DNA of 64,000 nt, from NCBI RefSeq assembly GCF_964194025.1, contig NC_134468.1, positions 930,001 through 994,000 of the forward strand, in the 5' to 3' direction. Below the pieces are notes generated by a model, which made no database searches, was not told the origin of the DNA, and was given only the letters and a program-made list of their open reading frames with translations. The stretch is from Convolutriloba macropyga. Taxonomy: Eukaryota. Positions 42,964 through 52,844 of this stretch are shown here, one piece after another. How positions within the stretch are numbered: position 1 is the first letter of the stretch; every line of letters begins with the position of its first letter. The translations under genes and the position numbers were made by a program.

Positions 42964-43616
42964 ATGGTGTTTATCATCGGCGCTAGCTGCCTAGCCAACG
43001 CTATCAAAGTTGCTCCCGAGGCACTCAGAAGTCAAGTACAGCCTACACTTTTCGCCAGAAAAGGACTGAGCCTGAACCCCAACGCCAAGAATAAACGGAC
43101 GAATCTCGAGCTCCTACTCACCCGTGGACCATTAAAGAACAAAAAGAACTTGATACTTTGGCACGGAGTGATCAGCAACTCCATCACCAGGCACATCTCG
43201 AACAATTACAGTGCCCTACCCGTCTCCAGCCTCGTTGAACTACTGCGACGTTTCAGTGATCGGATCTCGGCTATAGTGTACTGTCAACGACTAGGATCCA
43301 AAACATATTAGAGGAATTAAGAAAGCTTGACATCCTGGTGATCGACACAGGAAAGAAGTTACTATCAAAGAGACGCCAACGATCAGGGTGGTATCGGAAA
43401 CAGCTTTCATTGGTTCATCCGGACTCTGCGATAGAGTTAGGGCTTCTTACAAGAGTGCTCCAGAGAAGAAATAACCTGAAGAGCATCGTTCTTCGGAACA
43501 GGTCCTCCGGACGGAAGCGCCCATCTCAGAAGAGAAGCGAAAGAAAAACAAAAAGGAAACGACCTTCAAAGAACAAGAACAAGAAGAAGAGAAACAAGAG
43601 TACCGGCACCAAGTAG
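42964..43616 (+). CDS. LINE-A ORF0: SGNH-hydrolase-like protein with basic tail (1-nt frameshift near 43300)
   Basis: MVFIIGASC (block I-like), KGLSL (II), LILWHGVISNS (III), LVHP (V), then a K/R-rich C-terminus. Homologous to 52006-52476. Confidence 0.65.
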
Positions 43617-43779
43617 TCGCTAGCGCGTGTATACCACTGCTCTGGTAGCTTCCTGGAACTTCTGTTCCGGTGCGGCCTAGGTGGTGGTATACTCCAAGTA
43701 GTCACTAGCGCGTGTATACCTCTGCTCTGGTAGCTTCCTGGAACTTCTGTTCCGGTGCGGCCTAGGTGGTGGTATACTC
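43609..43779 (+). repeat. Two tandem 85-bp units, each a long stem-loop, between ORF0 and ORF1
   Basis: Units start at 43609 and 43694 and differ at two positions. GTATACCACTGC...GTGGTGGTATAC outer stem and CTGGAAC-TTCT-GTTCCGG inner stem. Confidence 0.9.
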
Positions 43780-43797
43780 GCCCCTGACAAGGTGAAA

Positions 43798-47831: not shown

Positions 47832-47863
<32 letters not shown>

Positions 47864-47902: not shown

Positions 47903-50788
47903 TCAGTTTTCGTTTGGCACGAGTTTTTTCATTGGATTGCAGATTCCACAGTTGCATAGAAGTCTCCAGGTGCAGCTGTCGTGTTCGTTGTAGCTTCTGT
48001 GGAAATAGTTTTGGTACATCTCTGTCAGAAGTTTCTTCGTCATTGGCTTCTCCGTTGTCCTACTGATGATGTTGAATAGCTTTGTGGCTCTGAAGAAAAA
48101 ATTTTCGTCTGATTTATGTAGTCGGTGTTTGGGGAGTTCAAATTCCTGCTTTTGTCTTGTTTCGTTTTCTTTTCGCTTTGGCAGTTTGTCTTCGGGGACG
48201 TAGTAATTGCCTTCTAGGATTGAGAGGAGATAGAGGACATCGTGCATTTCCATGTACATGGAGAGTGGGAGTATTTTCAGCGTTTTGAGTCTTTGATGGT
48301 ATTCGTCGTTTCCACCGCATATCCACTTTGTTGCCTTTTGCTGGATCTTCTCGATTGATTTCATGTCAGTCTTCGAAGGGTACCAGACTTGGGAGGCGTA
48401 AGTGAGTACGGGCACTACGTATCCTATGTAAGCGTTCAGTTTCGTTTCCATTGAGGTTCTGCTCGAAACATTTCGTTTGAGTGTGTAGAAGGCTTTCCAC
48501 GCTTTGGTTGTTCTAAGTTGGCAGTTTGCGCTCCAAGAGAGATTTCGAGACATTACGACTCCGAGATCTTTTTGGGTGGCAACGGTTTCAAGACCTGCTT
48601 CGTCACGCTGGGCTAGATCCCCTCTGATGAGGAGAGTTTTACTTTTGCTAACATTTAGGTCCATATGGTTTGCTTTGCTCCATTTCTGTATTTCCCCGAG
48701 AGTGGTCTCGCATTCGTGTTCACCGTGGGTAATTGCTTTGAAATCATCCGCGTATCCGAAGGCCGGGATGTCTGAGATTTCTTCGGGGAGATCGTCAATG
48801 TAGATGATGAACATCAGAGGCCCCAAAATTGATCCCTGAGGTACTCCGCTGGTTACATTTCTGGTCTTTGATTTGCTTGTTCCAATTTTGACGCGTTGCG
48901 TTCGGTTTGTGAGATAGCTTTCGAGTAGTTGGAGTAGCTTTCCTCCGAGGCCAATGTTCTCGAGCTTCTGGATGAGTCTTTTGTGCGCTACTTTGTCAAA
49001 GGCTTTTCTGAAGTCAACATACAGAGTTCGAATGTCATTGCATTTTTTCGATTCAAGTTGCTGGTATAGTTCGTCTGTGAAGAGGATGAGTTGAAGTACT
49101 GCTGATCGTTTCTTTCTGAAACCGTGTTGGGAGTCAGAGAGGGTTCTTTCTATTGGTGGGTAAAGCCGTTCGAAGATGACTTTCTCGAAGACTTTTGAGA
49201 CGTTCTTCAATAGACTTATTGGTCGATACTGTGTGATGTCTGCTTTGTCGTTTTCTTTGTAGATCGGGGTGATCTCACTTGTTTTCCAGCTCTCTGGGAA
49301 TTTTCCTTTATTAAGGCAGGTTTGGAAGATAAGTTTGAGAGATTTTGCCAAAGCTGGGGCGTTTTTTAAGATTATATTTCCGATGTTGTCTGGGCCGCAA
49401 GCTTTGTTTGCCTGGAGGCCCAACAGTTGTCTTTCGATTTCTTCTTCAGAAATTCTGAGGTAGTTGAGTCTCTGTTTTGGGTAGACTGAGGGTTCGTTGA
49501 TTTTACCATCTTTGGTGAAAACGTCGGAGAAGAAGTCGTTGAAGAGATTGCACTTTTCACTATCGGTTGTGGCTGTTTTCTTTGTTTCTTGTCCATTTTG
49601 CACAACATTGTAGTACATTTCATCAGGGAAGTGTTTTGATTTGCGTAGGGATTTCAGGTATTTCTGTAGATCAGACATTCGGCGGCTTTTGAAGAGTTTG
49701 TCTTCGTAGACTGCCTGATCTGTCAGGATTTGCTCATTGAGGAGTTTTTCGCGTCGTTTTATCTTTATCAGGAGGTTGAGGGTCGGTGCTCTCTCGTATT
49801 TTCTTTTCATCGTTCCGAGGATCTTGAGTTCGTGTGATGTGGCAGAGGAAATCCATGGGGGAAGGTTTGCTCGGTGCTGGGTGACACGGGGGATTAGTAT
49901 CTCAATTATCTTTTCGATCCATAGGTACCATTGGTCAACAAGTTCATCGACGTTGCTGAAGCAGTAGGGTGAAAAGGGATGGTCTCTGATGTGGCTGTTA
50001 AATTCTTTCCAGTCCACCTTGTGATATGCATGTTTCACTTTGGGGGCTGGTTTCGTAGCTGATATGTCGATGGAAATGGTTGTCCGGAATGCTTGATGGT
50101 CGGAGCATCTCTTTCCGTTGATTGAGTATTCCCGTGTTAGGTTTTTGTCGACTTCGGCAAGTTCAATGCTGTCAGGAGATTGGGTGAGGCATACATCCAG
50201 TGATTGATTTCGTTTGCAAGGCAGAATTTGCTGAAGTTGGTGGGTTTCAAAGTTGTTGAGAAGCGAAAGTTCGTAGTCATCATCTGAGAGCATGCTGTTC
50301 CAATCAGCTCCAGGGAGGTTGAGATCGCCGCTGACAATTAAGGTGTAACTATCCCGTTGTTTCATCTGTTTTTCGATTTCTTCCAGGGTTTCGTGGATTT
50401 GACTGGCTGGTGCCCTGTAAGGGCTAGATTTAGGAGGGTTGTACATGCAGCAAATTACAAGTGATTCAGTTGGAGTTTGTAACGCAATCGATACACTTTC
50501 CGAGTGCGTTGTGTTTTTCAGTCTGTAGTGAGGAATGTCTTTCACCGCAATGAGAACTCCTCCGTGTTTTGAGTTATGGTTTTCAGTAGGTCGGTCAGTT
50601 CTGTGGATTGTGTATCCAGTAAGGAAGAGTGCATTGTCAAGTACATCGCTTGTTAACCAGGTTTCCGTGAGACAGAGTACATCGTAGTTCCTCTTTGCTA
50701 TTTCATTGGCAAAGATTTGTCGCCTTTGGAAGTCAAGCAGACTTCGCACATTGAAACTGAGTATTTGGAGTTTGTTTTTATTTTGTAG
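47903..50788 (-). CDS. LINE-B ORF2: apurinic endonuclease + reverse transcriptase (intact)
   Basis: LQILSFNVRSL, LTETWL, GDLN, SDH; YRPISLL, QHGFR, DFRKAFDKV, GVPQGSILGP, YADD; C-terminal CTW...CNCGIC. The frame opens directly after the ORF1 stop. Confidence 0.95.
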   Translation of the reverse strand, partial: LQNKNKLQILSFNVRSLLDFQRRQIFANEIAKRNYDVLCLTETWLTSDVLDNALFLTGYTIHRTDRPTENHNSKHGGVLIAVKDIPHYRLKNTTHSESVSIALQTPTESLVICCMYNPPKSSPYRAPASQIHETLEEIEKQMKQRDSYTLIVSGDLNLPGADWNSMLSDDDYELSLLNNFETHQLQQILPCKRNQSLDVCLTQSPDSIELAEVDKNLTREYSINGKRCSDHQAFRTTISIDISATKPAPKVKHAYHKVDWKEFNSHIRDHPFSPYCFSNVDELVDQWYLWIEKIIEILIPRVTQHRANLPPWISSATSHELKILGTMKRKYERAPTLNLLIKIKRREKLLNEQILTDQAVYEDKLFKSRRMSDLQKYLKSLRKSKHFPDEMYYNVVQNGQETKKTATTDSEKCNLFNDFFSDVFTKDGKINEPSVYPKQRLNYLRISEEEIERQLLGLQANKACGPDNIGNIILKNAPALAKSLKLIFQTCLNKGKFPESWKTSEITPIYKENDKADITQYRPISLLKNVSKVFEKVIFERLYPPIERTLSDSQHGFRKKRSAVLQLILFTDELYQQLESKKCNDIRTLYVDFRKAFDKVAHKRLIQKLENIGLGGKLLQLLESYLTNRTQRVKIGTSKSKTRNVTSGVPQGSILGPLMFIIYIDDLPEEISDIPAFGYADDFKAITHGEHECETTLGEIQKWSKANHMDLNVSKSKTLLIRGDLAQRDEAGLETVATQKDLGVVMSRNLSWSANCQLRTTKAWKAFYTLKRNVSSRTSMETKLNAYIGYVVPVLTYASQVWYPSKTDMKSIEKIQQKATKWICGGNDEYHQRLKTLKILPLSMYMEMHDVLYLLSILEGNYYVPEDKLPKRKENETRQKQEFELPKHRLHKSDENFFFRATKLFNIISRTTEKPMTKKLLTEMYQNYFHRSYNEHDSCTWRLLCNCGICNPMKKLVPNEN

Positions 50789-51643
50789 TCAATTTTGTTC
50801 CGGAGGTGAGCTGCTGCCAGTAGGAGTGACATCAACGTCAATCCATTTCTTGTTTTCTTTTTTCTGCAGTTTCAGATTGCGAATTCGCAAGTCTTTTAGG
50901 GCTATTTTCTCGACATCTATGAGGTATCTGCGCTTGATCAACAGAGCATTTTCAAGCTTTTTCTCGTCCGGACTGAGTTCTCGGCTCACGAAAATTGGTT
51001 TATCGTAGGTTGCAAGTTTGTGGGCGGACAGCAGGACAAGTCGCCGATGATGTTCACTGGAGAATTTTGCAATTATAGTTCTCGTTTTCTCTTTTTCGTA
51101 GGTTCCAACGCGTTTTACATCATCCATTGGGCAGTCGATATCCATGTGGGCGAGGATTTCCTTTACTTTCAGAACATCTTCATCATAACGCTCTCTGGCG
51201 GTTTTTCCGGAGGATTCGGGAATCCCTCGGAAGCGTACCCCATCGAATGTTGGCTTTTCTCGGATGATCGGCTGTGCTGGTTGACGCACGGCTGGTTTTG
51301 TCGGCTCGGGCGGAGGGGACTTGATTTCCGCTCGGATTTTGGATATCTCAGATTTGACTTCATCGAAGCTCTTTGCTATTTCCGCCACGTCCGGGGATTC
51401 TCTGCTGGATGCCAAGTTGTCTAGAACTCGGTCTCGTTGGTTGTTCTGCACACAGTCGTTACATATGAGCAAAACATTTTGTCGGATTTCCTGTAGTCCA
51501 TATATGGCTTTTTCACTCATTCCACTGCATTTCGGGGTCAGGTGCATGGAGTCGCCACACGAGACACAGTTGAACACTGCACTTTTGTTACTGATGGGGA
51601 GGGAGCACGTTTTGCAGGTGCTTTCAGGTTTTGATCGAGTCAT
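50789..51643 (-). CDS. LINE-B ORF1 (PHD-like zinc finger + RRM-like)
   Basis: ATG at 51643 (MTRSKPES); CKTC...CVSCGDSMH...C...ICNDC; VRFRGIPES, RVG, RTIIAKF, IFVSRELS. Confidence 0.88.
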   Translation of the reverse strand: MTRSKPESTCKTCSLPISNKSAVFNCVSCGDSMHLTPKCSGMSEKAIYGLQEIRQNVLLICNDCVQNNQRDRVLDNLASSRESPDVAEIAKSFDEVKSEISKIRAEIKSPPPEPTKPAVRQPAQPIIREKPTFDGVRFRGIPESSGKTARERYDEDVLKVKEILAHMDIDCPMDDVKRVGTYEKEKTRTIIAKFSSEHHRRLVLLSAHKLATYDKPIFVSRELSPDEKKLENALLIKRRYLIDVEKIALKDLRIRNLKLQKKENKKWIDVDVTPTGSSSPPEQN

Positions 51644-51663
51644 CTCGGTTGCTTTATAAACCA

Positions 51664-51964
51664 GTCGCAATTCCGAGGTAACAATTGAAACCTCCGGATT
51701 CACTGACGGGTTTATACCTCAACCGAGGGGGTGACTTTCCAACACAGATCCGCGATCCCAAAGCAAGCTAATTGATCCTGGATTCACAGGATTTGATAGG
51801 AAACTACGAGGAAATTACACAATTCCGCGATCCTAAGACAATAAATGTCTCCGGGTTCACAGGAAGTGTGATTTAGGGGAACGTAAGTACTATTACTGAG
51901 GTTTCCTTACTAATTTCTGATTGCGATCCTGAGATAACAAGACCTCCAGGTTCACTAACCAGAA
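51664..51964 (-). promoter_or_regulatory. Array of four conserved RNA stem-loops in the LINE-B ORF0-ORF1 spacer
   Basis: Cores at 51667-51703, 51752-51787, 51827-51860 and 51923-51955 share GUGAA...AU(C/U)GC, with compensatory changes in the flanking stems. Confidence 0.75.
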
Positions 51965-52005
51965 AAAAGAAAAGAAAAAATCAGAAAAACAGTGACTTAC
52001 TCTGT

Positions 52006-52476
52006 TTACTCTTGCTGTTCTGCTTTCTTGCTTTCCCGCTTCTTCTTTCTGTCCTTTTGGCGTTTGTTCGGTTTCTTCTTTGCCGGCTTCTTCGATCGCT
52101 TCTTCTTGATCAGCTTTCGAAGATTTCGACAGTTTAAGAGAATAGTGGTGACCAACTTGAGATCGATGTGGGTTTCGGGGTGTACCTGGGTTAACTGGTA
52201 AAGATATTCAAAATTTGCCTGTTTTCTTCTTGAGCTCAGGTTTTTGGTAGCTTCTAGAATGAGGATGCCGGTTTGTCGGAGGTCGATGGATAAGTCAGGG
52301 GTACCAGCTCGGCGGGTGTAGACTATGGCCTCAATCTGCCCGTTTGAGTTGAGCTTCTTGAGGATTTCGACCAGTTGCTCGGGGGAGAGGGGTCGATTGT
52401 TGTTACTTCTGTGGGGGGTGATGCTATTGTTGATCACGTCGTGCCAGATGACTATTCGTTTTCGATTTAGGAGCAC
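52006..52476 (-). CDS. LINE-B ORF0 (5'-truncated): SGNH-like protein with basic tail
   Basis: IVIWHDVINNSITPH.SNN..PL, AIVY.RR.G, LSSRRKQ and QVHP align with LINE-A ORF0; KKKRSKKPAKKKPNKRQKDRKKKR tail. Confidence 0.7.
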   Translation of the reverse strand: MLLNRKRIVIWHDVINNSITPHRSNNNRPLSPEQLVEILKKLNSNGQIEAIVYTRRAGTPDLSIDLRQTGILILEATKNLSSRRKQANFEYLYQLTQVHPETHIDLKLVTTILLNCRNLRKLIKKKRSKKPAKKKPNKRQKDRKKKRESKKAEQQE

Positions 52477-52570
52477 AAATTTGTCAATTTAATGTAGGTC
52501 ACCAATGGTCCTTCAAAAATGCGCTTGCCTATTTTTGGGGCTTTCAGATTTAGTTTGGTTTTTGGATTAC

Positions 52571-52844
52571 ATGCAGGAGTCGACTGGATTCAGGAGTGAT
52601 GTGGAAACACTCCTCTCAAATTTCATCGACACGGATTCGGTTAGGTTTGAAGACTTTGCACGAATTTATAAGGAAATGAATTTTTCGCTGGTGTTCTTCC
52701 TGCTTGATGACGAAGAGTTGCCTGCTTTCCTGGATTCAGCATACTCTATAACGAGGAGTTTTCTACAGTCCAAGTTTCAATTTCAAGTTCGAGTTGGTGC
52801 CCTATATCTTTTGTATGCTCTCTATTCACAACAGCCTTTCCATG
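52571..52844 (+). CDS. SNAPC1: snRNA-activating protein complex subunit 1 (SNAP43)-like, first visible coding exon
   Basis: DVETLLSNFIDTDSVRFEDFARIYKEMNFS...FQVRVGALYLLYALYSQQP matches the SNAPC1 N-terminal domain; phase-1 donor G|GTTAGA. Confidence 0.82.

Follow-up and report, generated by a model that had tools for sequence, protein, structure and literature searches.

A repeated, covarying hairpin upstream of ORF1 in CR1-like LINEs of Convolutriloba macropyga: an RNA module that may serve protein recognition

Contig NC_134468.1 of Convolutriloba macropyga contains, in the 64,000-nt stretch analyzed here (the window, to the positions of which all coordinates refer), a CR1-like long interspersed nuclear element (LINE) with three open reading frames (ORFs), which is designated LINE-B and has the minus strand as its sense strand. 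The original prediction, made from the sequence of the window, had placed four covarying RNA hairpins on that strand between ORF0 and ORF1. The four hairpins were found there, with the quoted stem sequences being correct, and comparison of the sequences indicates that they are copies of one cis-acting RNA module, which selection maintains in the sense transcripts of a CR1-like LINE clade. The position between ORF0 and ORF1 was right as to place, but ORF0 of LINE-B is a frame without an AUG; since the 5' end of the element at 52484 is common to 14 copies, with DNA contigs breaking there into different flanks, this frame starts at the first bases of the element. The element comprises the following parts.

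51644-52484, minus strand: AUG-free leader, from the LINE-B 5' end up to the last base ahead of the ORF1 AUG
52006-52476, minus strand: ORF0 remnant, 156 open codons, no AUG, with a Lys/Arg-rich C-terminal tail
50789-51643, minus strand: ORF1, encoding a PHD-type zinc finger and, after a linker, a C-terminal half that bears an L1-ORF1p-like GIRVRGIPES motif
47903-50749, minus strand: ORF2, encoding an apurinic-type endonuclease and a reverse transcriptase (Pfam RVT_1, 6e-33; Exo_endo_phos_2, 7e-11)
47832-47863, minus strand: (ACU)n microsatellite 3' tail (Tandem Repeats Finder: period 3, 10.7 copies)

The four hairpins (HP1 to HP4), which occupy 51965-51662 on the minus strand, have one design in common. 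From the base upward, it consists of a lower stem of 3-9 bp, a 1-nt bulge (A or U), the pairing GUGA:UCGC (UUGC on the 3' side of HP4), the second pair of which is a U.G wobble in all four hairpins, an A.A mismatch, a 4-bp stem, a bulged G, a distal stem of 3-5 bp and a loop. The 4-bp stem is mostly UCCG:CGGA across the module and, in LINE-B, differs from hairpin to hairpin. The features of the array are listed below, with the basis of each hairpin in parentheses, where R1 is a covariance model built from the four LINE-B copies and MFE stands for minimum free energy.

51961-51989, minus strand: pyrimidine tract of 29 nt, located between the ORF0 stop and HP1
51914-51965, minus strand: HP1, 9-bp lower stem, bulge A, GUGA:UCGC, A.A, CCUG:CAGG, bulged G, distal stem and loop (sequence, MFE fold, R1 match over 51919-51960 at 49 bits)
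51823-51865, minus strand: HP2, UUCC:GGAA, bulge U, GUGA:UCGC, A.A, CCCG:UAGG with a single C x A mismatch, bulged G, AGACA:UGUCU (sequence, fold, R1 match at 59.6 bits)
51748-51792, minus strand: HP3, AUCC:GGAU, bulge U, GUGA:UCGC, A.A, UCCA:UGGG, with a weak distal part (sequence, fold of 52010-51640, R1 match at 52.6 bits)
51662-51709 (51664-51707 in a narrower delimitation), minus strand: HP4, GUC:GAC, bulge A, GUGA:UUGC (a tandem U.G/G.U), A.A, UCCG:CGGA, bulged G, AGGU:ACCU (sequence, fold, R1 match at 51.3 bits)
51644-51727, minus strand: predicted extended basal stem under HP4, ending one base ahead of the ORF1 AUG

The MFE fold of 52010-51640 recovered all four hairpins at -128 kcal/mol (z = -6.78), and none of 100 shuffles folded as well, whereas the antisense strand of the same segment was weaker (-105.7 kcal/mol). 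Individually, the hairpins have energies of -11 to -21 kcal/mol. When the whole leader (855 nt) was folded, HP1, HP2 and HP4 were present in both the MFE and the centroid structure, and a small local alternative hairpin competed with HP3. The last hairpin core stops 23 nt upstream of the ORF1 AUG (51643), as had been predicted. The extended basal stem under HP4 was seen in the MFE and centroid folds, and the fixed differences within LINE-B gave it no covariation support. The spacers between the hairpins are unrelated sequences in LINE-B, which agrees with the earlier description, though the pyrimidine tract precedes HP1, and the 35 nt upstream of this hairpin are 89% pyrimidine. Pyrimidine tracts with UCUU motifs, or CU-rich tracts, adjoin several hairpins. 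A pyrimidine tract as the obligatory partner of every hairpin was considered and rejected because tracts are missing before some of them.

The pairing of the module was evaluated first within LINE-B and then across lineages. In a MAFFT alignment of the four LINE-B copies, 96.8% of the cells pair and both sides change in 9 of the 17 pairs, values that were reached by none of 500 shuffles, and registers slid by 1-3 columns give only 22-43% pairing. R1 was run over the genome and over the upstream regions of divergent ORF1 homologues, resulting in a model-fitted alignment of 60 distinct copies from five lineages, in which 91.5% of the cells pair and compensatory double changes occur in 12 of the 15 pairs. 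None of 500 shuffles matched this alignment in its paired fraction, in its doubly changed cells or in its covariation score; 14 of the 500 attained its count of doubly changed pairs, and slid registers gave 25-46% pairing. Among the 60 copies, there were 126 G.U cells compared with 28 A.C cells, an excess which indicates that the structure belongs to the sense RNA. The irregular features were nearly constant, with A on the two sides of the A.A mismatch in 56 and 57 of the 60 copies, the bulged G in 52 and the U.G wobble in 51, whereas the sequence of the lower stem and the identity of the 1-nt bulge varied freely.

The variation among LINE-B copies is of the same kind. Insertions and deletions are nearly confined to the spacers and loops, with one exception in a stem (a 2-nt deletion in HP2 of the copy L013), and the two fixed differences between the young and old LINE-B subfamilies that fall inside hairpins keep or improve pairing; HP3 has a U-A pair in the older subfamily and U.G in the young one. 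Furthermore, the spacers of LINE-B and of the families C, D and E described below cannot be aligned, and the hairpin core is nonetheless kept. Selection on structure, rather than simple tandem duplication, is thus well supported by the sequences, as the original prediction had proposed, because compensatory changes recur in five LINE lineages, with at least one other assembly among their sources, on the sense strand only.

The search of the genome and relatives that had been suggested with the prediction revealed the module in four further LINE lineages, with ORF1 identities to LINE-B of 45-57% where measured. All significant R1 matches were on the sense strand of an element, just upstream of ORF1.

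Family C: 2 hairpins; ORF1 identity not measured (old, decayed copies); array between the end of a basic-tail ORF0 and a PHD ORF1
Family D: at least 5 hairpins; ORF1 about 55% identical to LINE-B; units of 88-127 nt
Family E: 4 hairpins; ORF1 49% identical; on a 329-kb contig of another assembly
Family F: 1 hairpin; ORF1 45% identical; hairpin ending 10 nt ahead of the AUG
Tara Oceans contig: 3 hairpins; ORF1 57% identical; D-like copies

The spacer of family E has no DNA match in the C. macropyga genome. Its core is GUGC:GCGC, in which an A-U pair is replaced by C-G relative to LINE-B, and single family E copies show changes of G-C to A-U and of U.G to C-G; neither the bulge nor the A.A mismatch nor the stem lengths are altered. 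The module is repeated from 1 to at least 5 times in the noncoding stretch directly upstream of ORF1, always between the end of the basic-tail ORF0 and the ORF1 AUG, and the ORF0 stop lies 20-60 nt upstream of the array in the four lineages where it could be placed (B-E). In families B, D and F and in the Tara Oceans contig, the distance between the end of the last hairpin or extended stem and the AUG is 0-10 nt; in family D, an analogous 10-bp basal extension ends 4 nt before the AUG.

A degenerate pattern of the module, searched genome-wide, found 67 sites, all in LINE-like arrays, compared with 1 for the reversed control; the module is thus low in copy number and restricted to LINEs, and use of the motif by short interspersed elements or host genes was ruled out on this basis. 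R1 with its filters off found no further copy over LINE-B, including the 3' untranslated region (UTR). A broader covariance model (R2) found no module in ten loci with 33-48% ORF1 identity, in the loci L084 and L085, or in LINE-A, another element in the window. In the comparison with Rfam 15, which had also been proposed, no matching family was found: the region 51000-52600 gave chance-level matches only (best 23.8 bits against a gathering score of 70), and families D and F and the Tara Oceans contig gave no match at E <= 1. Full-text literature searches found no description of such a hairpin array. Other hairpins are nevertheless repeated at the same place in related elements: LINE-A has two 85-nt hairpins between ORF0 and ORF1 (43609-43779, plus strand), L068, L069 and L084 have two or three (three in L068), and L065 also has duplicated hairpins of its own. 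Judging from these sequences, a repeated structured spacer is general to the LINE group, and the GUGA-type module is specific to one clade.

The genome (1.18 Gb) contains about 17 copies of the hairpin region with 86-100% identity, eight of them at 98% or above. A search for public sequencing runs turned up DNA data only, and in the four runs used the element was covered about 8 times as deeply as its flank, in agreement with some 8 young copies; these runs showed no joints. A microsatellite 3' tail of the (ACU)n type is typical of CR1-group LINEs. In the C-terminal half of ORF1p (50792-51250, minus strand, residues about 130-284), the pattern GIRVRGIPES...RTILVKF was recognized, and weak Protein-Atlas feature matches of 0.84-0.85 to L1 ORF1p and Transposase_22 families serve as a lead only; these features suggest that ORF1 combines a PHD with an L1-type RRM. 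A profile search of solved structures with ORF1p gave weak PHD matches only.

The ORF0 frame of LINE-B lacks about 70 N-terminal codons that are present in families A, D and E, including the start MVF(I/V)VGAS (a putative GAS esterase block). Among the fixed differences between young and old LINE-B in this frame, 6 are synonymous and 3 non-synonymous, compared with 22.5% synonymous expected at random (binomial P of about 0.006, which is weaker if transitions are favored, and the numbers are small). This bias is a hint from the sequences that the LINE-B ORF0 frame may still be read, and possible explanations for such a bias in a frame without an AUG are non-AUG initiation or a recent loss. A Pfam search of the ORF0 products of LINE-B, LINE-A and family E gave no match. 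In the ORF0 of L084 (2251-2832), a family with 41% ORF1 identity, a sub-threshold similarity to a GDSL-like lipase was noted (PF13472, E = 7e-5, 23.9 bits against a cut-off of 32.9).

The leader ahead of ORF1 is marked by a lack of AUG triplets. Over its 841 nt, the LINE-B leader has no ATG in any frame where 8.7 would be expected, and only 0.1% of 2000 dinucleotide shuffles were ATG-free; the depletion is strand-specific, as CAT occurs 8 times. LINE-A likewise has no ATG over the 834 nt from the ORF0 start (42964) to the ORF1 start (43798), that is, within 42967-43797 on the plus strand. In four decayed copies of family D, including L079+L061 and L080+L059, the ATGs in the approximately 1.1 kb between the ORF0 and ORF1 starts are all private to single copies, and family E has one ATG in 1.1 kb. 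Depletion within ORF0 fits leaky scanning, and neither internal entry nor reinitiation would need it. Leaky scanning also fits the U at -3 of the LINE-A ORF0 AUG, the two out-of-frame AUGs that in family D open a 20-codon upstream ORF overlapping the ORF0 AUG, which by its position would divert ribosomes past ORF0, and the lack of any upstream AUG in LINE-B. Hairpins of -11 to -21 kcal/mol are within the unwinding capacity of scanning complexes, so that the energies and the AUG desert are both compatible with scanning. Scanning from the 5' end through the array is thus the most likely route of ribosomes to the ORF1 AUG, and, as far as the sequences indicate, we read the array as located in the path of these ribosomes and not as their site of entry.

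In its context, the leader resembles the polycistronic, leaky-scanning RNA of rice tungro bacilliform virus (ORFs I-III): both have a long stretch without AUG in all frames that includes an upstream ORF, the start of which is weak, non-AUG or bypassed. The viral RNA has no repeated conserved hairpin, and the likeness concerns the context only. As a separate observation, in families D and E out-of-frame AUGs cluster shortly ahead of the ORF0 AUG, no farther than about 25-45 nt from the element 5' end (1249-1311 in the L080+L059 join; L079+L061; 1866-1880 in L077).

Of the two functions that the original prediction had considered, a multimeric protein-binding array gives the best fit, as far as sequence evidence goes. 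Our leading reading, which we hold only tentatively, is that the array serves as a multi-site landing pad for an element-encoded protein, which would nucleate a ribonucleoprotein (RNP) and/or gate the translation of ORF1. Constant irregular features on a stem of changeable sequence are the usual signature of a protein-recognition site, and the constant irregularities of the module, located 4 bp apart on such a stem, could form a specific protein-recognition surface. Candidate binders are ORF0p, with its Lys/Arg-rich tail and its stop codon shortly upstream of the array, and the L1-like ORF1p, encoded directly downstream. Binding of such a protein would nucleate the RNP in cis on its own encoding RNA. 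Since the gap between the last hairpin and the AUG measures 0-25 nt in families B, D and F, a bound array could also stop scanning into ORF1 and shut off ORF1/ORF2 translation once the protein accumulates. Comparable sites are known from the MS2 operator, HIV TAR and RRE, and lambda boxB, which are short stems with constant bulges or non-canonical pairs that are bound by basic peptides or coat proteins; in some viral operator hairpins, binding represses the adjacent start codon and starts packaging. The LINE-B module has no sequence or motif in common with these and differs from them in being arrayed in a retrotransposon.

Several points weigh against this reading. The 60-copy covariation counts were obtained from a model-fitted alignment of related sequences and are not tree-aware, although the support remains strong. 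L1-type ORF1 proteins are largely sequence-unspecific single-strand binders. In families C and E, the last hairpin is separated from the AUG by about 50-65 nt, so that gating at the start codon cannot apply to all families. In more distant families (ORF1 identity of 33-43%, LINE-A among them), unrelated tandem hairpins occupy the same site, so that a generic structure could outweigh a specific site. Moreover, a young LINE-B copy (L018/L019; G000:C9:45002890-45004039) with an intact ORF1 of 99% identity has three hairpins only, a unit having been lost between HP2 and HP3, which implies that the copy number of the array is flexible.

A more elaborate proposal, which we consider speculative and rather unlikely on the present sequences, is a tricistronic CR1-like LINE in which ORF0 and ORF1 would be expressed from a single capped RNA by leaky scanning across an AUG-free kilobase, and in which an operator-like array shortly ahead of the ORF1 AUG, bound in cis by the basic-tailed ORF0p or by ORF1p, would halt scanning ribosomes and switch the RNA from message to packaged retrotransposition template. 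If true, this would be a translation-to-packaging switch in the style of a phage or retrovirus in a non-LTR (long terminal repeat) retrotransposon, and it would give a physical basis for cis preference.

Instead of binding an element-encoded protein, the array could be a translation element that recruits or repositions ribosomes for ORF1, in the form of an internal ribosome entry site (IRES), a shunt structure, with take-off once ORF0 has terminated and landing past the last stem, or a reinitiation signal. Its location directly upstream of the ORF1 AUG, which the extended last stem in B, D and F approaches to 0-10 nt, would suit this role, as would the pyrimidine tracts with UCUU before several hairpins; for a shunt, the ORF0 stop lies 5 nt ahead of the predicted extended stem base of HP1, and this stop-to-stem distance of 5 nt resembles the caulimovirus shunt. 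However, we regard a translation element as unlikely. AUGs are missing in all frames over ORF0 and the spacer, 0.8-1.1 kb in B, A and D, and neither an IRES nor reinitiation would select for AUG loss; ORF0 of LINE-B itself has no AUG, the hairpins are only moderately stable, and C and E do not keep the distance to the AUG. With 150-230 codons, ORF0 is also long, and a long upstream ORF normally abolishes the competence for reinitiation or shunting, and a shunt is further opposed by the presence of several separate hairpins with no single enclosing stem. The internal-initiation element raised in the original prediction is accordingly disfavored, on indirect sequence evidence, by the AUG-free leader of LINE-B, LINE-A and family D together with the modest energies of the hairpins.

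It is also conceivable, with a similarly low probability, that the hairpins, the pyrimidine tracts and GUAAGU are bound by cellular proteins, for protection against nonsense-mediated decay (NMD), nuclear export or germline localization. Precedents are the Rous sarcoma virus stability element for NMD protection and the signal of the Drosophila I-factor for localization. The former, a PTBP1-bound region past the gag stop with unstructured pyrimidine-rich PTB sites, resembles the array in lying directly past the stop of an upstream ORF in the genomic RNA of a retroelement and in having CU-rich tracts, but it has no covarying hairpin, and the tracts of the LINE are not located before every hairpin. 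Such a host-factor site would account for an array located 20-60 nt past a stop codon with about 4 kb of RNA beyond, for the CU-rich tracts adjoining several hairpins, for the U1-complementary GURAGU at the end of ORF0 in many families, and for the occurrence of different hairpins at the same place in different lineages. On the other hand, the tracts are missing before some hairpins, LINE-B keeps the array despite an ORF0 without AUG, and the co-evolution of the constant core with the lineage of the element suits an element-encoded partner at least as well.

A DNA-level repeat without an RNA role, either internal-promoter monomers as in the mouse L1 5' UTR or a relic of tandem duplication, is very improbable: although the family D unit spans spacer and hairpin and is clearly a recent tandem duplication, 1.45-kb tandem units with a hairpin in each occur in the locus L086, and vertebrate CR1-group elements are reported to have 1-5 repeating subunits in tandem near the 5' UTR (PMC13343379), this explanation is contradicted by the compensatory double changes in 12 of the 15 pairs, by the excess of G.U over A.C and the constant U.G wobble, which would be mismatched in DNA, by the fact that in LINE-B the hairpins alone are alike, and by the internal position of the array, 480-1000 nt from the 5' end.

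The comparison with these 5' tandem repeats of LINEs, including the A, Tf and Gf monomers of mouse L1, is nevertheless instructive. In all of them the number of units upstream of the first essential ORF varies, and the units are lineage-specific and evolve by duplication, but the present module conserves an RNA structure with compensatory changes and sense-only wobbles, and its array lies downstream of ORF0. The 3' UTR stem-loop of the stringent-type LINEs UnaL2 of eel and ZfL2 of zebrafish, which is bound by their own ORF2 protein (PMC4176376), is similarly a small conserved hairpin of CR1/L2-group elements and, in that case, a specific protein-recognition site; it is a single 3' copy with another motif, whereas the LINE-B module is located 3.8 kb upstream of the (ACU)n tail. 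Tandem repeats in LINE 5' regions and single recognition hairpins in LINE 3' UTRs are already known, and no description was found of a covarying hairpin with a constant non-canonical core that recurs in the space from an upstream ORF to ORF1 and is kept from one lineage and assembly to another.

Two other structural readings of the module were rejected. A kink-turn or box C/D-like motif needs a 3-nt bulge and tandem sheared G.A/A.G pairs, whereas the module has one bulged nucleotide, four pairs of standard or wobble type and only one A.A mismatch. Kissing-loop dimerization had been considered in view of the loop palindromes CAAUUG in HP4 and GAAUUC in one family E loop, but the loops differ between families and older LINE-B copies break the palindrome.

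The translation of multiple ORFs and the selection of an element's own RNA (cis preference) are poorly understood in non-LTR retrotransposons outside mammalian L1. In this respect, the module offers a sequence-defined handle of about 43 nt with supported pairing and three near-invariant irregular features, which can be mutated, probed and used as bait, and the AUG-free leader and the separate, basic-tailed ORF0 upstream make the system testable by reporters and retrotransposition assays. The hairpin model is also of use in annotating genomes, as it locates the beginning of ORF1 in LINEs of this clade.

The following observations concern the surroundings of the array. A hexamer resembling a 5' splice site occurs next to the end of ORF0.

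51995-52000, minus strand: GUAAGU, 5 nt past the ORF0 stop

GURAGU is found at or just past the ORF0 stop in many families, including B, C, D and E, often inside UAAGUAAGU (sites at about 4980 in L057, 440 in L061, 2580 in L077 and 2835 in L084). In LINE-B, GUAAGU is succeeded by CUGAU, the pyrimidine tract and, on the 5' side of HP1, UUAG, so that an intron-like segment of 46 nt (52000-51955) results. We consider a spliceosomal intron an improbable reading of this segment, since the YAG of a 3' splice site is absent from family D, which has C as the bulge, and from HP2 and HP3, which have U, the equivalent in family C is only 28 nt long, and no genomic copy or contig without the segment was found. 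GUAAGU may instead be a U1-binding or stop-context motif.

In the locus L086 (G000:C7:28586500-28592500), which belongs to a family with about 39-52% ORF1 identity, at least three of the tandem units lie upstream of ORF1; the units are 91-93% alike and have one GUGA-type hairpin each, an arrangement that resembles L1 monomers. The Tara Oceans contig (L083; ERZ907786, marine metagenome) is a fragment of a D-like LINE, the ORF1 of which starts at 283 and not at 379 as called; the last extended stem ends 4 nt ahead of this start, and a marine planktonic animal may be the host.

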